The position numbers and the translations under genes were made by a program. From positions 3,534,001 to 3,598,000 of the forward strand of contig OU015569.1 in the NCBI GenBank assembly GCA_907165135.1: a stretch of 64,000 nt of DNA. The letters are read 5' to 3'. The notes beneath the pieces were generated by a model. It was not told the origin of the DNA, made no database searches, and worked only from the letters and a program-made list of their open reading frames with translations. This stretch comes from Oikopleura dioica. Lineage: Eukaryota; Animalia; Chordata. Below, in pieces: positions 47,667-59,051 of this stretch. How positions within the stretch are numbered: position 1 is the stretch's first letter; each line of letters begins with the position of its first letter.

Positions 47667-50600
47667 ATGGGAGACCAAGAGGAGGACTTGTCGAAATTGG
47701 CGACTTTCGACCTGGTCCAGCATAGCAACTGGAAGGGACGCAAGATGGGATATGAGCGGCTCTTGAAAGAGGTCCCAACTTATGTCCTTGAGCCAGAGAA
47801 GCTGAAGAAATTCTGCCCTTTGTTGAAAGGACTCGTCAGCGAGAAGAATGAGCTCAGCAGAATCCTCTCTTCTGAGCTAGCGTTTCTCATTCTCGAATCA
47901 GCAGAAACGAAAACAGTTGCCAAGTAAGCTATCTTACCCAAAAATCTCTTCTCTAAAATTCCGTTCAGGCACGTTTCTTCTGTGGTGGATGGGGTCATCA
48001 ACAACTGCTTCAGCTCGAAACCAAAAACGAAGCAGAACGGCGTTGATTGTGTCATGCAGTTTATCGAGCATGAGAAACACGCTGAAGCTTGCGCGGGGCT
48101 CTTGGAAGGCGTCAAAAACAAGAACCCAAAAGTCGTGACGGCGGCCGTCGAGACCTTGAATCAGGCTCTCTGCGAGTTTGGTCCAAAGGTCGTTCAATTG
48201 AAGCCGCTTTTCGATGAGCTTCCGAAACTTTTTCAGCACCGCGACAAAAATGTGCGAAACGCGACGAAGGACTTCTTTGTTGAAGCTTACTGCTGGGTGG
48301 GTGCAGCTGTGAAAAGCCAGCTCGAAAAAATCCCAAAAATCGAGCAGAACATCAAAGAATGCGAAGATGCTTGGAAAGACATGAAAAGCAAGGTAAAAGA
48401 GAGTAATTTTTTAATAAATAAGTAACTCATCTTTTAGAGCAAGCCGACTCGCTTTTTCAAGCGTCTCCAAGCTGAAAAAGAAGCAGAGGCGGCGACTGTA
48501 AACGAGGCTGGCGACGCTGGAGAAGCATGTGAAGAAGCAGCCAACGAAGAAGCGTTCGCTCAAGATGCGTGGGAGTATGCTCCCAAAATTGATCTTGGCG
48601 AGATTAAATCTGTGAAGTACGGAGAAGACAAGCTATCGTTTGCGGACGCGATGGCATCGAAGAAATGGAAGGACAGGGGTGCCGCTTTGGATAAGCTCAT
48701 GGAAATATTGAAGATCGACAAAGATACGATCATCAAAGTTCCTAAGGGTGACTACATCGCACTCATCACCGATCTTAAAGTCGTCATCAAGAAGGACACG
48801 AATGTTCTGCTAATCTCAAAAGCTTTGAAAATTGTTAAAGCTCTCGCGGATGGCATGAGGATGGGCTTTTCTCAGTACGGTGCTATCTTACTCCCTGAAA
48901 TCATCGCTCGCTTCAAGGAAAAGAAGGCCGCAGTTCTCGAGGTCGCGCGTGCAGCTGCTGATTCGATCGCTCTCGTGACGAAATTTCCAGACAGCTCGAT
49001 GGAGCTCGTTCTTTCTTCCCTCGAAGATAAAAATCCTGGTGTTCGTGCGGAAACGATGTCTTACATTTTCAGAAACGCGAGACCGAAGACAATCAAGTTT
49101 CAAAAAACCGTCATCAAAGAATTTTTAACTAAGGTGACGAAAAACATCGAGCATTCCGATAAAGGCGTCCGAGAAGCAGCTTATCGTGTGCTGGCACTGA
49201 TGAGCACTAAACTTGACGCAAAGATAATGAACACCTTCACAGCAGACTTTAAAGACGATCGTATGAAGCTTTATGAAGACGCTAAAGCGGAGCTAGCCAA
49301 AGCGCCCGCTCAGCAGATCATACAAGCTTCTCCTGCCACTTCAGCCGCCTCTGCGCCGCCGAAAAAAGTACCGCCTCCTGTAAAGAAAGTGCCGTCAAAA
49401 TCAAAAACTGCGCCTATGAAAAAAGCAAAGAAAGTACCTGACAAGAGAAAATGCCCAAAAGAGAACTCTGGAGATGCCGGGCCACCTTTAGAACCTGAAA
49501 TTGACGAACTAGCCGCTGTCGATATCTGCAATGAACTCTACGGAGAAGCGACGATCAAAAAAGTACAAGATAAAATCTGGAAAGTCCGCTTGGAGGGCCT
49601 TCAGGAGCTGTTCCAAAAAGCAGAGATAGAAGCCCCCGAGGAGATAAAGACGCAGGCGATTCTCAAAACACTGTCTCTCGCGCCTGGTTTCAAGGACTCA
49701 AACTTCCAATGCAACCAGGAGAAATTCAAAATCATCAAGGTTGCTGTGCGAAACCCAAAGCTGTCTGATACCTCGATCAACATTGTCTTTGGCTACTGTC
49801 TCGATAAGATCGCTGATCCGAAATGCTCTGCTGGATCCAAAGAGTCGCTTTCTTCAATGGCTGATTCTGTTTCACTTGCTCATCTTGCGCCTCGAGTGCT
49901 GTGCGAGGGAAATAAACTCAAAAGCGTCAAAAATGTAGCGGAGTGTTGGAGATGGTTCAGCGATGCTCTCCCTCAGTTTGGCTTTGGCAAGTTGGAACTC
50001 AAAGTAATAATCGAAGAAGCTGTGAAAGCTCTTGGTAACACTAATGCGATCGTCCGTAGTAATGCAGTCGACGCTATCGCCGCTCTTATCCGGTACGTTC
50101 CCCAGCTCCGTCCTAAGTTCGACGATCAAAAAGAAGCCATCAAGGCCCAAATAGACTCAGCAGTAGCAAAGTTCGACGGTCCACCACCTGCACCCACTCG
50201 TGGACCTGTGCTCAAAGCGCTAGTAGCTAAATCAGACAATAACGAAGACGATAATAATGCTGTGAACGAAGACGCTGAAGAGGACGATCTTATTCCACGT
50301 GAGTCAATCTCGAGCTCATTCACTCAAGATTTACTGGACAAACTCGGCGACAAGAACTGGAAACTGCGCAAAGAAGCACTCGAAGAGGTGAAAACGATCT
50401 TTGATAAGAATAAGTTCATAGCACCTGATCTTGGAGATCTTCCGCTTCCACTCTGCAAGCGACTTGTGGATGTAAACAAGGTCCTAGTTCAGATGGCTTT
50501 CGAAATCACAAGTGCAATTCCAGCTAGTCTTGGTGCAAAAGGAGCGAGAGCACATTGCCGCACCTTTACCGTGGCGATAATTGGAGCATTGAATGATTCA

Positions 50601-53600
50601 AAAGTTCAAATCCGTGAAAAGGGTATCAGTGCACTCGAAGCTTGGCTTAAAGAAGCACCTCTTTCCTACTGGTTCGACGACTCCAATTCCATTGCGGAAC
50701 TTCTCAGCGATGCTAAAAAAGTACATTTGCGGTATACCTTCTTGTCCTGGCTGTCCGATCATCTAGCTACCGCGAAAAAACTATCGTCCAGTTCACTGTC
50801 GGCTTGTCTTCCTCACCTGTACAATTGCCTTGAAGATCGCGATGCAAAAGTCCGTGAAGCAGCGACTAAATCGCTGGTCAGCTTTATGATCCATCTCGGC
50901 TTTCCAAAAATGGTCAAAGCTTGTGGAACCAACCAAAAAGTTCGCCTCGAGTTAGAAAAGGCCAGAGAAGCTCTTCCAAAAGTTGAAGTCAAAGCCGAAG
51001 TCATTAATCCTGATGTCTTGATGACGACTAAAGATTGTGGATCCCCGCCCACCAAGAAAACTAAAAAATCCGAAGAAAAGACTTCCACGGAAAAAGTCGA
51101 AAAGAAACCGGAAAAGAAGACACTCAAGAAGTCGAAGTCCTCTTCAAGATCGCTGAAGTTGGACAAGGATGATATCGGAGAAATTATCACGGGTATGTCA
51201 AAGATCTTTTTGCAAAAATATACTAACTCTTGTTTTTCAGGAACAGAGAAGGCCAAAGATAAACGGCGTCTCGAAGACCGAAAAAAGAAAACACTGACTT
51301 GTAGGGTAGGCCAAAAAAAAATGGAAGGTCCGTTTCATCCCTTTTTTCAATTTCAAATTAAAGTTAGTATAAAAACTGACTTTTTTTGTTTTGATTGTCA
51401 TACCCTCACGCGAGGGGAAGACACATTTTTAAGCCCTTCAAAACCGAAGGGCTTGAGGAAAAAATGGCGGCGCCGGGAATCGAACCCAAAACCTCCAGCT
51501 TGGTGGAGGACTGCGCTCACCACCAAGCCATCTCGACTTGGAGGTGGAGTAAAATAAAACATTTTTATATGATTTTTGATATTTTTAATATAAATTTTAT
51601 GAAAAAAATTCATTTTTTATTAAAAAAAAATTACTTTTTTTATAATTTGCCACAAGTGGCAGCAAGGAGCAGCCATTTTCGTCGTTGGTGGAGCAGGAGC
51701 ACGGATTTTCTTCCAGATTTCGAACTCTGGCGGAGAGACAGCGCAATATTTGCGCTTTTTTTCTAGGTGGTCGAGTGCCACGCTGGCAAATTTTGCCGGT
51801 GTTCAGTGCCGCCCGGCCTCCTTAGCATGGCCAGTTTTTTTTTAATTTTGAATTTATTTAAAATTTTAAAGAAGCTGGTCCCCCTTCCCCTAGAATTTAT
51901 GGTAAGATGGGGGCGGGCGCCGGCCAGTTCCGTCGCCGAGCCCCATTTCCCCAGAAACCCACCAGGGATGGTTTCGTCGAACCAGCCCGGCCCTAGCACC
52001 GCGAGGGGGGTCTAAGTGGTGGGTCTGGGGTTGCCCCCTGAAGCCGCGGTGACCGGACCGCTTTAGAGCAAGCCCTGCAGCTCCCTTGAGCAAGGAGTGC
52101 TGGTCTCTTTAGGCCAGCGGCAGGGCCCGAGCCCTTAGGATCCCACCGGCCGGGGCACTTGCCTGAGGCGGGATTATTATCCCACAACCCGAGCCTCTTA
52201 AGGGCAGTGCCCCCTGCCACCCCGACCGTTCCCCTGCCTAATCCGGATCTACGGGCAGGGGGCCCAAGCAAGCCAGGGGGGGGCTTTGCCCTTCCTTGGT
52301 GTGCCAGAAGAGAGCAGTCCACCCACCAGCACGGGTGACTCCCGGCGCGCCCCAACCCGTCCCCGGGATCGAGGGACTTGGTTTTGCCTCGGGCGAAATC
52401 AAGGCCCACCTGGCCCTTGGCTTAACAGCCTTGCGCCGGGCGAACCCGAAATGGGGGAAACTACGGGGGGCACTGGTGGGATTAGGGGGGCTGCCTGGCA
52501 CACGGGCTGTCGGGGTAAAAGTGGAAAAAAGGAGACGGGTCATGCCCAAATTTTGATTTTTTTTTTGTTTTTTAAAAAGAACTTTAAAATGATTTTAATG
52601 GTTAGTATGACTGTTCACAAGACTATTAACTATTCTAAGGTCATTTTTTAGTCAATAAAAAACAGAGATGATCGAAATTATGGCTGAGGGAGTAGGACTG
52701 TAGTGATTATTCATATTTATATGATCAGTTTCTTTAAACACAAGGATGATATAAATTGAATTATCGAGTCCCAAACCGAATAGGCATTGTGAACATTATT
52801 ACTTTCTTTATCGACGTACACATGGAACCGACGACTATTATCCAGGAATATTGCTTATTTTAAAAATCTTTTTGCAAGCAATCTCTGCAGACACAGACGA
52901 CTGGAACCGACGACTCATGGAACACCGCATATTCAACTTATACCAGAACATTCTCCATTTTTTTTGAAAGAGGAATCTACAAAAGCATTTTTACAATTAT
53001 TTTTTCCACACAATATTTTTTGTACTTTTTTCTTCTTTTGTTCATTCAGAAAATAGGTTTATAAATAACTAACGGGACTTTTTTTAGAAATCTCGGTATT
53101 TGTGAAATGTCCGCTTCGAAAATCTCCATCGACTCGAGTGTTCTCTCTGAACCAATGAAAATTGCTGAGCTTGCGAATCGTGCTGGTGTTCCTATCGAGA
53201 AGCTTGTTGCCCTTGCGAAAAAGAAACGAAATGCCAAAGAAAGGGAGGCAGCTAGCTCAAAGCTTGCGAGGAAAATTCTCAGCCACGCGTTCGCCTCCCG
53301 AGAATTCCTTCAAAAAAACACCCGAATTCTGGCAAGTCAACTCCTTACTTTCCCGAACAATGACGAAGTACAGCTTTTTGTTGGGCAACAGCAGGATTCA
53401 ATTCTTGATGCTTCAATGAGAAGCGAGACGAGCCTTGAAGAGTCTATGGGAGAAGACCATGGCTACGACACAACTGTCAATAGTCTCGATGTGTCTCATG
53501 CCATGTCATGTGACGATAGTGAGCTTGTCGAGGAAGACATCATTTCTTCTGGAATCAAGGATGATGCCATCGAAGAAGAACAAACAGCAACAGATAGTTC

Positions 53601-56600
53601 CTCCGTGTTGAAGGATCAAGTCATCCAGGCGATTATCAATTTTCCGAGATTCCGGGCGCATCACATGGAAAAAATACTGGAAATACTTAATGTTGATGTT
53701 GTGAATCCAGATGTGCCGTCCGATACCGAGTCGACCACTGATGCAGAGTCAGTCGCTTCTAATTTCAGTGATTCTTTGGAAGACGAGAAACTCCCCACAT
53801 TGGACAATAACCGAGAAAAATTTTCTCTTTTGAAGTTGATGTCAGAAAGCAACTTGAGGTGAATTTCTTTCTCATAAAATTTATAATAATATCTTTTTCA
53901 GTTCCTATCAAGCTCAAAATGTCGCAGAAGAACTCATTCAACCTGAAAAAGCCCGAGGGCTTAGTTCGCGAAATCTTCGAAGGCTGACAAACTGTTCTGA
54001 AGAGTTGAGCACGGAGCAACTCATCCGGGTCATCGAGAATTCCGACGAATTTGTCCTTGGAACTGACGGCTCGAAAATCGCTTCGAAAAATTCCAAAGTT
54101 ACACCATCCGAGCCGGGCAAGAGTGTTACATCTTTCGAATGGTCAACATCCCAAACGAAGTTTCTGAAACCGTTTGTGAAGCATTTACGACTTATCTGTC
54201 GGAGTTTCCTCGAGAGACTCAAATACAGTTTGCGTCAAAGGTAAACTTAAACGCATTTATTCAAACCAACATTATTATATAGTGCATTGCATTGAGCAGT
54301 GATTCCGCCCCGTCCGCATTGAAAGCCTGCAGGCTCATCATGTCAGCCTTGGACAAGATTCATCCCCGAGAAAGGCTCCAGTTGAAGTGCAGTATGCATA
54401 GGGTTGTACATTGTGAGAAAGGAATCCGATCATGCATAAAGGGTGTCTTCGATTCGATCTTGGAGTTTTGCGAAGCCTACCTTACCTGCAGCCGTAATCA
54501 CGGACTACACTCAAGCAAGGGCCAGCAGCTCGAAGTTTACTTGCAGGCTCTGCGTCTTCGGGACGGACTGGAGAGAGTGACAAAGCCTCTAGAAATGCAA
54601 AGCCATGTTCGGTAAAAGATCTCATTAAAATCCGATTTACATAAGTCTTCTAGCTTTGGCAATCTCACGCATAACACCCAACGTTTGGTCGTTAATTACA
54701 CCGACATCACCAGCTTTGTTCGCTATGAACTTGAACTCGAAGACGATGCGAAAGTTATGGAAGAGAACAAATCGAAAGCAGTTTGCGAATTCGCCAGCTC
54801 TGCATTGGTTTACAGTGTTATCGTTGCGCCATATTGGAGTCGTGTGTCTGGATTGTTGTCATCAGAGAATTATTTGGGGCTTGAAGAATACTTCATTAAA
54901 ATTCTTCGAGATGTTGCGGAATGCGCTTCTCCAGCTTTATTTCTCCTTGAAGAAGCTAAAAAGACTGAAGTCGAGTGGGAGTGTGGCTTTGAAATGGCTG
55001 TTTTGCAATTGACTGCTGACCAGAACACGTCCAAATATCTTGATGATTGTATAAAGCTTCGACTCAAAGCTGTGAATGAGCGATTTTCCAAGTTTGCTAT
55101 CGACTGCTCATTTCCTTTTACCAAGGAAATAACGTTTACGAATCAGGTTTACTCAGCAATTTATTTCAAAAAATAATTTTAATAAGGACTGCGAAAGAAG
55201 CTTTTCAAACGCGAAAGATCTCTTTTCCCGGAAATTCAACATGGACACGAAGAAATTCGAGACCAATGTCATGACTCGATTTAACATGACCTACAGTTTT
55301 TGGCAACGTCAGCCGGATTTCGAAGAAAAACTCTCGAAGATATTGGCTAAGGCCTCTTCAAAAGAAGCAAAGAATACGGAGAGACGAAAGTCTTTACGAA
55401 TTGAGTCGGCGGCGAGAAAACTTGAGGAAATCCAAGAAGGTGAAGCGAGACGGACACGATTGGCCGTTTTTCATGCTGTTATCGGGGAGAACAAGCTCTG
55501 GCCTTCTGACGATAATGAGGTTAAAGAGTTCATTCATATAAAATAACAAATATTTATAGAACGACGAGAACGAATGCTTCGAAAAGTTTCTACAACTCAT
55601 CAAGCCAAGCTTTACCGGAAAAGTTTCTCTTCGAGAATTTCGTGGACATGTTTTGGATTTCTTGAACAGTCAATTGTCCGAAGAGGACAGGAATGTCATC
55701 AATTCAACCCTGAAGAAAAAGAGATCGAAAAAAGAGCTGTTCACCCAAACTGTTGAGTTTTACAATAAAAATCAATGATTTATCAAAGTACTTAAATTTC
55801 TTGTTTTTATTTTTTCGAAAAAAAAATTGGTTTTACTGGGATTCGAACTCGTGCCTCTTGTATTTGTGACTCTTGCTTATTGTATTTTTAAAGTCTAAAT
55901 CGTTTCAATAGATTGATATATGGCGCCTTAACAGCTAACATTTTGATATTTGATTTTTTGGACATTTTTATATAATTTTGATCTCACGTGACATCACATG
56001 ACCCTCGATTACCAAGAGTCACGTGTCAAAATAATCAGTGGATCATAAGCTTTCGTTTGATATGTTAATCATCCCTATAAAGGGTTGTTTAAAAAAAATT
56101 GATTTTACTACTCCGCGTAAATACGTATGCGGTACACCTTCTTATGAAATTTTGAATGTCTTCCCCTCGCGCTAGATGGTCTGTCAGATACTCAAAATGT
56201 TCGTCTTTTTAAGATCTTTCTAATAAAGTAAAAAAAACTTCTGAAACGCAGGTACAAAAAAAGTTATGAGCCAAAAACCGTATTTTTAGGTTTTGAACCC
56301 TCCGGAAAGTAGGGAAGAAAAAATTTTTTTGGATTTTTTTTTGTTAAAAATTTATTTATGGGCAAAAAACATTAATCTCGTAAAGTTTAAAGGAAATCTA
56401 AGGACCATCCCTTTTTTTGGCCTACCCTACTGACTTGGTACTTCGACCCAGGAACCGCTTGTGGTAAAGAGCTCATCGAGCAACTGAATAGGCAGATATC
56501 GTCTTCTTTTGGGGAAAAGTTCGCCGCTCTCATGCATAAATCCGACTCAACAGCCATTGGTCGAGTCCTGGACATCATTCAGTCCCAGCCTACTGATAAG

Positions 56601-59051
56601 CTCACCAGTGTGCTGGATATAGTTCTCCGGTGGTCGACGATCCGACTGAATGAAAAGAACTCGACTATCACCATGCGGGTGCTCAACTATCTCCACTCAG
56701 TCGTTGAACAGTTGCGCAAGGAGGAATACTTCATGTCTCCCTTTGAAGCCATCCCTCTGTTGCCGCACTTGATTTTAAAGCTCGGAGAAGCTCGTGTTGA
56801 AGTTCGAACTCTTGTCGAACAGATTCTCAATGAAATCCGTCTTCTTTTTCCGGAGAAACAAATTTTCGAAGAGTTACTTCAGGGTGCAAAGTCGAAAAAC
56901 TCTCGTCAACGAGCGGCTTGTTTAACCATCTGCGCTGGAATGATCCAGAATTCGGGCATTGAAATCATTGGTGATCCAACGAAAGGAAATTACAAAGAGA
57001 TTGGTGCTCATATTTCTGATAAGGATCAAAACGTACGATCAAGTGCGATGAATTGCCTTGTCGAAGCCTATAAAACAGTTGGTGAGGAGCTTTTCAAATC
57101 AAGAATGGTCGGCAAGCTTGGAGACAAGGAAGAGTCTTACTTGAGAGAGCGGATTAAACGAACACTCGGAACGTCAGATACGTCAGCCAACGAAGCTCCA
57201 GTTCTTGCTCCGAAAAAGGCATCTGAGACTCCACGCCGAGGAACAGTAACGCTTAAAAAGGGTGCTACACAACCTGTTAAACGAGATCTGCCTGAGGTGT
57301 CTAAGAGCGTGGACAGCAAGCTTATGGAACGATTCGGCTTCAAAGTGCCAACATCAGCTTCTATCGATTTTAAGTCACCAGTGATGAAGTCTGTCAACAG
57401 CGAAAGCATCAGTAAGGTTCCCCGTCCGCCGAGTGCTAGTAGCCGTATTCCGAAACTCGAGAAAGAAAAAGAGATTGAAGAGCTAGCGAATCTTGTTGAT
57501 CACTTCTATCTTACCGAAAACAAGATAGAAGATTTGCGAAAAAAGCTAAACACGCTCAATCTTGCGACTTTCAGAGATGGTGCGAAGACCTTGAAAATTA
57601 TTCTGAATGAGACAGAAAAGCCGATTTCTCTCTCAGATCAAGAGCTTTCTGGTCTTCTCTTGCCTGTCGCGAAAAATGGTCTCCAGCTCTCAAAGCAAGC
57701 CATCGATCAAGGCGAGCTTCGTAAGTTCTTTTTCGATAAAATAATAATATAAAATACTCTTTTAAGGTGTCACGCAGCATGTGACAATCCTTTGCTGTAG
57801 CATTCTCCAGAAGTTTATCAAAGGAAAAGACTACCGCGATCGGATTAACGGAGATGACTTGGCTGCAATTGGAGCATTTCTATTCACCATGCTCAAATGC
57901 AGAGAAGCCCAGGTAGAACGGCATAAGTGCTTGAATTTTAATAATGATTGTAGGAGATCATCAAGACCATTGATCCTAAGTTTACTTCTGCGATCCTACA
58001 GGTGATCAGTGATGTCTCAAAGCAGTGCAAACATGACCGAGTATCCCTCGTAAGTATTCTTTGTTAAGAATTTTCAAATTTTATTCGTTATTAAATTCGG
58101 TTTAGATGTACTTGGATCTCATTTCAAGCGCCCTTCGTGATGAAAAACTGGAAGAAATTCAAGCGATTAGCAACAATTTCTACAAGTTTTTCACACTTCG
58201 CAATACGACGGAGAAGCTGAATGAGAACGACGTCTCGAAAGTCTACTATCCAGCAGAAAGTTTCTTCGCGGAGTTTCCTAAAAGTCACCAGGTGTTCAAA
58301 AAGAACCCTGAGTATTTCAACGCGCTGAGGTTTTATTTCAATAAGTAAGATATGAACTAACTATCTCTCGTAGAACGGTTGTCACATTTACAACTAACCT
58401 GACTCGCCACAACGGCGACGCTGTCGAAAGATTCATCAGGAAGTTCCAGCCAAAGAAATCAAGTCTTTTGAGCCTCATCGAAAAGGAACTTCTCAAGAAA
58501 AAAGCGAAGGATTCTCAGGATGAAAATGCTCGGCAAGCTTTGTAAGTAGCCCTCATAAATGCTCTTTTTTAAAACAATTGCTTCAGCACAAATGCTCTCG
58601 CTCAAATCAAGAAAGTAGAGAGCCATGACGCCGGATTAGAAGCTTTGCATCAGTTTGTCTCGGCGAACCCAGAATTCGATCTTGATGCGGGACTTTCTAA
58701 AGAGGACGAAAAGTTCAAGGCTTACGTCAATAAGAAGCTCGGCGATAAAAAAGCTGGTAAGTTTTTAGTCAACATTTATTATTCTCAATTAATAAATCAT
58801 GATTAGGTCACGAAGTTACGATGATCAGCAGCGCTCCACCAACTGCAAGCGCTATCGAACAACGGGCAAAAGTAATGAGCGAGAAATACTCTCTCATTTC
58901 CCAGCCCAGTAAACTGAAGAAGCCGACTGCAAAGGACGAAAAAGAAAACGTCTCGACAGCGGCGCCAGTCGAAGCTCGGAAAGTGCCCTCGAAGAGCACC
59001 CTGGACGAGTATCGAAGACGACTGGAGCAGCTGCGCAACGCTAGAAAGTAG
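47667..59051 (+). CDS. CKAP5: Microtubule polymerase CKAP5/XMAP215/ch-TOG, interrupted by a transposon at 51302-56429
   Basis: Tandem TOG domains (HSNWKGRKMGYE, SKKWKDRGAAL, DKIWKVRLEGL, DKNWKLRKEAL); the sequence resumes after the insert as LTWYFDPG..KELIEQL; C-terminus LDEYRRRLEQLRNARK*. Confidence 0.95.
51465..51537 (-). other. tRNA-like / Pol III promoter relic inside the transposon's left end
   Basis: 73 nt with A-box TGGCTTGGTGG, D-stem GCTT/GAGC, B-box GGTTCGATTCC, ending CCA followed by T6; the acceptor stem does not pair. Confidence 0.6.
53107..55778 (+). CDS. hAT-like DDE transposase, 6 exons; apparent 1-nt frameshift at A-run 54086-54090
   Basis: FVLGTDGS (D1), CIALSSDSAP (D2), LKCSMH (CxxH), HVRF (RW-equivalent), TNQDCERSFS (E); five GT-AG introns. 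Confidence 0.8.
55828..55890 (-). other. Second, more degenerate tRNA-like relic near the transposon's right end
   Basis: B-box GAGTTCGAATCCC (55838-55850) followed by ...CCA and an oligo-T run on the minus strand. Confidence 0.35.

Follow-up and report, generated by a model that had tools for sequence, protein, structure and literature searches.

How does an animal grow to maturity when his only X-linked copy of a microtubule polymerase gene is split by a transposon lying in a coding exon? The question is raised by a locus of the larvacean Oikopleura dioica, in a window (by which we mean the whole analysed stretch of 64,000 nucleotides, positions 3,534,001 to 3,598,000 of the forward strand of contig OU015569.1 in assembly GCA_907165135.1) that carries the orthologue of XMAP215/CKAP5/ch-TOG, hereafter CKAP5. 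We hold, with slightly better than even confidence, that a young autonomous transposon of the hAT superfamily, inserted into the X-linked CKAP5 exon with which the TOG5 domain starts, has produced a truncating but tolerated allele, its tolerance being possibly aided by exact excision of the element. The class of the element is a known one, and the interest lies in the viability of a hemizygous carrier. New here are the autonomous copy with its corrected transposase, the fold-level assignment to hAT, the argument from a hemizygous male, and evidence resembling complementary DNA (cDNA) against GT-AG splicing. The locus amounts to a natural experiment, namely a CKAP5 exon insertion on the single X of a male grown to maturity, in an allele that seems to have persisted through many generations in culture.

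The insertion and its host gene

The transposon occupies positions 51302-56429 on the plus strand. It is flanked by an 8-base-pair (bp) target-site duplication (TSD), CTGACTTG, at 51294-51301 and 56430-56437, and both of its ends are formed by a perfect 18-bp terminal inverted repeat (TIR), TAGGGTAGGCCAAAAAAA, at 51302-51319 on the plus strand and at 56412-56429 on the minus strand. A search of the window for this repeat with up to 3 mismatches recovered the two element ends and one poor match, with 0.13 matches expected by chance. Deletion of 51302-56437 gives back the uninterrupted CKAP5 reading ...KKKTLTWYFDPGTACGKELIEQL..., just as the initial annotation of this DNA had proposed, and the same reading is present in sequences from elsewhere. 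Its description of a full-length element with a perfect 8-bp TSD and matching ends is likewise upheld by the TSD, the 18-bp TIRs, and the intact transposase gene discussed below. These terminal features are those of hAT elements: the short TIRs have the 5'-YARNG type of start (TAGGG, with 18 bp perfect), and an 8-bp TSD accompanies both the X-linked element and a relative on chromosome 2, while the empty site elsewhere holds a single copy of the target. The element measures 5,128 bp in the assembly and 5,133 bp by reads, the difference arising from an AAA after 51458, a C after 51886, and an A after 54085, which all read sets add and which mark homopolymer errors of the assembly.

The host gene can be identified by homology as the XMAP215/CKAP5/ch-TOG orthologue of O. 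dioica (Okinawa). Three exon pieces flanking the insertion match the Pfam family XMAP215_CLASP_TOG, and the downstream piece finds Xenopus CKAP5-A (XMAP215), Drosophila Msps TOG5, and C. elegans ZYG-9 TOG3 in PDB. An orthologue of 1,945 amino acids from another O. dioica lineage (P0036), which clusters with proteins that the Joint Genome Institute calls cytoskeleton-associated protein 5, is collinear with the window in tblastn, its residues 1-1163 corresponding to 47667-51299 and its residues 1162-1945 to 56430-59048. Since this alignment is collinear on both sides, the gene is complete except for the insertion. It thus shows the TOG array, the TOG5-type last domain, the C-terminal domain, and the collinearity with orthologues expected of CKAP5, and the earlier naming of the host stands on the Pfam and PDB matches and on P0036. 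The 5' part, with TOG1-4 and the basic linker (residues 1-1163 by tblastn with P0036 and by Pfam), lies at 47667-51301 on the plus strand and includes an ordinary 48-nucleotide GT..AG intron at 51192-51239, which is skipped in a contig of run X2 (described below). The 3' part, with TOG5 and the C-terminal domain (residues 1164-1945 by tblastn with P0036 and by PDB matches), lies at 56438-59048 on the same strand. The insertion falls in a coding exon between residues 1163 and 1164 of P0036, at the entrance of TOG5, the PDB-based homology to which begins 11 residues further on. Hence, the initial placement of the element upstream of the last TOG domain needs correction, in that the site does not lie in a linker well ahead of that domain. 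In the filled allele, the CKAP5 frame runs for 85 codons into the element on the plus strand (51302-51557, with the stop at 51555-51557), as seen in the open reading frame (ORF) 48612-51557 and in the X2 contig; an exact-protein look-up found no record of a 406-residue ORF specific to this allele.

The public annotation divides the gene in two. The first model, of 1,184 amino acids, ends within the transposon (window 47667-51552; L001 4561-8446), and the second, of 745 amino acids, begins at the first ATG past it (window 56532-59051; L001 13426-15945). Orthology tables that rely on these split models will miscount the gene.

Age and polymorphism of the insertion

Four sequencing runs were compared over window positions 51000-56800, and three of them were informative, namely X1 (short-read contigs, probably from the source animal), X2, and X5 (DNA of another individual). 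In X1, the left junction is spanned by a 10.9-kb contig and the right junction by an 18.9-kb contig (records 1 and 8). In X5 the site is empty, and the haplotype around it departs from the window at 11 positions over about 665 nucleotides of flank. X5 also contains the element interior, with only 3 differences over about 3.6 kb but joined to unrelated flanking sequence, and a nearly identical copy therefore sits at another locus in that individual. Three wild metagenome contigs (Tara and others), 98-99% identical to the window, have the empty site, and the lineage of P0036 has the uninterrupted CKAP5 reading.

The near-identical element elsewhere in X5, taken together with the empty CKAP5 site on a diverged haplotype, indicates that the element moved recently. 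Its insertion into CKAP5 is of recent date and segregates among individuals, and the element is far younger than the divergence between alleles of the host. The initial suggestion of a young insertion is in this way confirmed by the empty site in the wild contigs and in X5 and by the near-identical copy elsewhere. Misplacement of a transposon copy into CKAP5 by the assembler was considered, given the small homopolymer errors that the assembly contains within the element. We reject it and assign it a probability close to nil, since the independent X1 contigs bridge both junctions and a cDNA-like contig of another sample also bridges the left one. At the level of contigs, the comparison of filled and empty sites that the initial annotation had called for gives X1 as filled only and X5 as empty, and the junctions proved to be spanned.

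X-linkage and the hemizygous male

The annotated transposase product of the element (P0001) is encoded once, on OU015569.1 (12,959,145 bp) of GCA_907165135.1, under a gene name that contains XSR. The assembly paper gives the X-specific region (XSR) as 12.9591 Mbp, with a Nanopore coverage of 140 against about 255 on the autosomes (PMC8008620). The assembly was made from the amplified DNA of one fully mature male, I69, of generation 47 (PMC8008620). The locus is in the X-specific region and is haploid in I69; the source being a single male, the filled CKAP5 is his only copy at this locus. Such hemizygosity fits the appearance of the filled form alone in X1.

The initial annotation had offered a heterozygous null allele, which in the form of a recessive null picked up by the assembler would draw on the empty alleles that do occur in the population. 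This fails on the haploid state of the region in a male and on the X1 contigs, which are unbroken over both junctions and lack an empty joint. We have accordingly rejected it as highly improbable. An X-linked allele lethal to males would be halved each generation and would never appear in an adult male. As a hemizygous male reached maturity, the filled allele appears not to be a recessive lethal. The same follows from its presence both in RNA of generation 30-31, if run X2 is that RNA, and in the mature male of generation 47.

Transcripts across the junctions

Run X2 is labelled 'DNA?' but is cDNA-like: one of its contigs skips the 48-nucleotide CKAP5 intron at 51192-51239, no depth is left for that intron, and the G+C-rich block of the element is hardly covered at all. 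The study behind X1 and X2 sequenced oligo-dT RNA of pooled animals from generations 30-31 at three stages, namely embryos, immature adults, and adults (PMC8008620), and X2 is likely to be one of these pooled libraries. Its assembly graph branches exactly at the TSD, downstream of an upstream exon contig of depth 97. The major form, at depth 160, is the exact uninterrupted joint, with flanks identical to the window (0 differences in 626 nucleotides). The other is a read-in contig (51272-51992, depth 13.3) that passes unbroken from the exon to at least 690 nucleotides into the element. By the depths of 13.3 and 97, about 14% of the CKAP5 transcripts here read into the transposon. No contig of X2 bridges the right junction, nor is read-out seen at the right end. 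The element interior, 52524-56429, is represented by one contig of depth 29 in which all five transposase introns are retained; this RNA may be antisense, nuclear, or spliced only in particular cells, as that of the P element is.

The presence of the exact joint raises a distinct explanation of tolerance, namely that the element is a newborn intron, cut from the CKAP5 pre-mRNA together with one TSD copy by an unconventional and possibly TIR-guided splice. That a hemizygous mature male carried the allele is compatible with this, as is the predominance of the exact joint in the pooled cDNA-like contigs, on flanks identical to the haplotype of the window. Furthermore, the larvacean Fritillaria borealis splices AG-AC and AG-AT introns derived from miniature inverted-repeat transposable elements (MITEs) (PMC11282704). 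If correct, a transposon newly landed in an essential X-linked exon would have done no harm even at the outset, having been born as an intron. However, the splice signals are not in accord with it. In-frame GT..AG pairs near the ends were enumerated (one of them, 51328/56451, would add a net 12 nucleotides), and none was seen in use: neither the X2 read-in contig nor the contig of the upstream exon breaks at the donors 51301, 51306, and 51328. Removal as a GT-AG intron through TIR-borne donors was rejected on this ground. The ten possible placements of an exact cut have the ends AC..CT, CT..TA, TG..AC, GA..CT, AC..TG, CT..GA, TT..AC, TG..CT, GT..TT, and TA..TG. The intron ends in the O. dioica annotation are GT-AG, GA-AG, GC-AG, GG-AG, GT-CG, and GT-AA (10.1101/2023.05.09.539028), and none of the ten pairs fits either these classes or the Fritillaria AG-AC/AT class. 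On the whole, no usable frame-keeping splice signals were found in the element, the TSD, or the exon. Moreover, about 14% of transcripts read in, while retention of the neighbouring normal CKAP5 intron is undetectable in X2. Given that empty alleles exist and that the RNA was pooled, the simplest reading of the exact joint in X2 is that it comes from empty alleles, and removal at the RNA level is without positive support. The initial proposal of tolerance through splicing is thus unsupported so far, with no known intron ends fitting and the read-in contig unbroken, and we regard the newborn intron as unlikely.

Other RNA data add little to this picture. The RNA raw-read run X11 gave 8 partial reads, none of them on CKAP5 exons; it is taken as another lineage and is uninformative. 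The other RNA runs with this species label contained none of the sequence words that were sought.

The transposase and its assignment to the hAT superfamily

The transposase gene lies on the plus strand at 53107-55775 and, from the exon model, P0001, and homology to P0007, consists of six exons (53107-53858, 53902-54240, 54283-54611, 54654-55146, 55187-55519, and 55560-55775) separated by five GT..AG introns of 40-56 nucleotides. The annotated product P0001 (Oidioi.mRNA.OKI2018_I69.XSR.g14271) has 773 amino acids. Its paralogue P0007 (chr2.g3968) is 58-64% identical to it, with part of exon 2 homologous in another frame. The assembly lacks the A after 54085 that all three informative runs contain, and its absence breaks the frame; the annotated model was consequently given a false intron. 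With the A restored, the six exons are open for 821 amino acids and match P0007, intron 2 becomes 54241-54282, and the transposase gene is therefore intact. The initial claim of a full-length element is supported by this read-corrected gene. An exact-protein look-up found no record of the 251-residue ORF of the first exon, and only six relatives of the transposase were found among 1.84 billion representative proteins.

The assignment to hAT relies on agreement among fold matches, in combination with the TAGGG end and the same design in the chromosome 2 relative. An ESM Atlas model of residues 250-680 of P0001 matches GTF2IRD2, ZMYM1, ZBED1, DUF659, and DUF4371/Dimer_Tnp_hAT clusters with template-modelling scores of 0.62-0.76. 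The AlphaFold (AF2) model of P0007 is mediocre, with a predicted local distance difference test score of 66, and is poor in the beta-strand part. A Foldseek search of Swiss-Prot with this model returned FAM200A/B first, followed by ZMYM6 and ZBED5. Compared with 48,161 PDB chains, it found the Hermes transposase as the best match (Z 9.2), the sole one above 8, over the insertion domain of Hermes. With the same model, nothing but noise came from Foldseek run against PDB or from a search of the ESM Atlas by shape, and the matches among AFDB clusters were mostly unnamed invertebrate proteins. In these predicted structures, the fold matches, which in the ESM Atlas cover residues 250-670, include the RNase-H-like core with an intervening all-alpha insertion domain that characterizes hAT transposases. 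The hAT dimerisation family PF05699 has no Pfam match here, and the fold matches span the corresponding region in clusters that carry it.

By eye, we recognized what we take to be the hAT blocks, namely the D in GTDGS, the D in SSDSA, the C-x2-H in KCSMHRVVH, RFGN in place of RWNS, and the C-terminal CERSFS. GTDGS, SSDSA, and CERSFS, which contain the candidate D, D, and E, are shared by P0007 and by P0001 once its exon 2 is corrected from the reads, and CERSFS is conserved in P0006 as well. The family profile run against PDB yielded no alignment at the level of residues to a hAT enzyme of solved structure. Taken together, the modelled folds and the ends of the element indicate that it is a divergent yet recognisable hAT, and the identification made in the initial annotation is sustained by the hAT-type ends, the 8-bp duplication, and the fold matches.

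How the allele may be tolerated

A sequence of events can be proposed on this basis. The element would have inserted by cut-and-paste into the exon that opens TOG5. Transcripts reading in would meet a stop in the CKAP5 frame 85 codons inside the element, and the filled allele would thus encode a truncated protein of about 1,250 residues, against 1,945 at full length, predicted to keep TOG1-4 and the basic linker and to lack the domains downstream. This TOG1-4 product would suffice as a hypomorph, a route that we favour tentatively among those considered, at rather less than even probability. Excision followed by microhomology joining on the two 8-bp TSD copies might in addition restore the exon and help tolerance. 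O. dioica has lost classical non-homologous end joining (PMC6635534; 10.1101/2023.05.09.539028), and this, in conjunction with an element depth in X1 of 70-80% of the flank, makes exact reversion attractive.

Several points weigh against the account of a tolerated hAT insertion. With regard to the element, Pfam applied to every exon, to the spliced C-terminal 84 residues, and to P0001 and P0007 gave no hAT match, and searches of PDB sequences, by phmmer and with a family profile, returned nothing relevant; sequence profiles miss hAT. With regard to the host, TOG5 and the C-terminal domain of the Drosophila protein are required for polymerase activity and spindle function (PMC5461023), and a TOG1-4 product would for this reason be expected to be badly impaired, which makes its tolerance surprising. 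The 3' half of CKAP5 is 64% identical between O. dioica lineages, a conservation which suggests that the gene could not do without it over longer times. To our knowledge, CKAP5 is needed for spindles in every model animal. With regard to the transcripts and to reversion, the placing of X2 among the pooled RNA libraries has to be set against a label that reads only 'DNA?', the unspliced transposase introns in X2 do not suggest abundant transposase, and the X1 contigs contain the filled site and no empty joint, contigs being blind to rare empty molecules.

Reversion might also act as the main rescue rather than as an aid. In that case, the element's own transposase would excise it from some chromosomes, joining on the TSD microhomology would restore the exon, and revertants in the polyploid soma and the syncytial germ line would supply CKAP5. 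The intact transposase ORF and the location of the element at different loci in different individuals speak for this, as does the loss of classical end joining; the element depth of 78-84 in X1, against 97-116 on the flanks, leaves room for a minority of empty chromosomes. Yet X1 has no empty-site contig, mean contig depths are a crude measure on amplified DNA, and the transposase introns are unspliced in X2. Frequent events would also erode the allele, which seems to have been kept from generation 30-31 to 47 (if X2 is the RNA concerned). Reversion mosaicism as the main rescue is hence rather unlikely. The remaining possibility is a back-up by another gene resembling CKAP5, be it a paralogue on an autosome or a copy on the Y. 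A search with P0036 gave no second O. dioica protein, a weak negative because 8,000 word-sharing candidates were scored and the known 1,184-residue model was itself missed. The gene in the window is otherwise intact, collinear with its orthologue, expressed, and conserved in wild contigs, and these properties speak against its being backed up, an explanation we rate as unlikely. Whichever of unconventional splicing, microhomology reversion, and a tolerated truncated polymerase applies, the tolerated truncation being the reading we prefer, this is one locus, open to genotyping by polymerase chain reaction, at which to learn how larvaceans survive transposons in exons.

Other content and relatives of the element

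In its left part, the element contains a tRNA-like fragment on the minus strand (51465-51532), which ends ...GGTTCGATTCCCGGCGCCGCCA and is followed by TTTTTT. ARAGORN calls it, as tRNA-Trp-like, at a relaxed threshold and not at default settings. Contigs break at this fragment, implying that it is repeated elsewhere. A 34-nucleotide stretch at 51696-51729 reaches a depth of about 1,150 in the source run, where its surroundings have about 100; the element thus harbours a short repeat of very high copy number. Composition, comparison, and depth together delimit a block of 676 bp at 51870-52545 with 65% G+C (the genome has about 40%) and a CpG observed/expected ratio of 0.59. This block is multi-copy and diverged in X5 and near zero in depth in X2. 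Neither a match in Rfam nor a convincing ORF was found in it, and it may be cargo or a nested repeat. Rfam gave sub-threshold noise only over the whole of 51000-57000.

The relative on chromosome 2 (L005 7076-10353, OU015567.1) is 3.26 kb long, encodes P0007, and is 64-70% identical in DNA. It has the TIR TAGGGTTGGCCAAAAA and the 8-bp TSD ATACCGGG, and is thus of the same design as the X-linked element. The left 1.8 kb of the X-linked copy is absent from it, and nothing in it matches the G+C-rich block. It sits between a cation-efflux gene and a zf-CCHC gene. Record 11 of run X2 is a transcribed 1.7-kb contig with a short element that has the same terminal repeats (matching 51301-51321 and 56413-56433) separated by 587 nucleotides of different sequence, and thus represents a non-autonomous relative situated at a different locus. 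The TIR has a depth many-fold above the flanks in X1 and X5, which, along with this short element, indicates that short relatives exist. When metagenomes were scanned with the 18-bp TIR, all 42 matches were isolated and attributable to chance, none resembling the element any further. The X-linked element is probably an autonomous source of transposase for the TAGGG...CCCTA elements of the compact O. dioica genome.

Comparison with known systems

The characterized hAT elements (Ac/Ds, hobo, Hermes, and Tol2) share with this element the 8-bp TSD, short TIRs of the 5'-YARNG form, and a single transposase gene, and it is one of them, Hermes, that provides the best structural match in PDB. The transposase departs from theirs in lacking a Pfam match to the hAT-dimerisation or BED domains and a profile match to Hermes, in an acidic N-terminal region of 250 residues with no zinc finger, and in about 150 extra residues past CERSFS. 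The element itself is further distinguished by five tiny introns, the tRNA-like piece, and the G+C-rich block. The derivatives of Buster/Charlie type (FAM200A/B, ZBED5, ZMYM6, and GTF2IRD2; DUF4371) are its top named structural neighbours in both Swiss-Prot and the ESM Atlas. These are, however, domesticated host genes without ends, whereas the present element is mobile, with perfect TIRs and a TSD. The central TA of Buster TSDs is seen in neither CTGACTTG nor ATACCGGG.

In maize, Ds/Ac insertions in exons are partly spliced from the pre-mRNA, with donors in use and leaky alleles as the outcome. The present case resembles these in being an exonic hAT with donor-like GT sites (AG|GTAGGC in the TIR and AAG|GTCCGT 26 nucleotides inside), and differs in that the cDNA-like contig shows no branch at such sites. 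A second comparison is with transposon-derived introns, namely the introners of Micromonas type and the MITE introns of Fritillaria. There, splicing is seen and the elements are short MITEs; here, a 5-kb autonomous copy is read into by RNA, and the dinucleotides of exact removal fit neither class. What the two have in common is a DNA transposon with TIRs and a TSD, situated in a coding exon of a larvacean whose carrier is viable.

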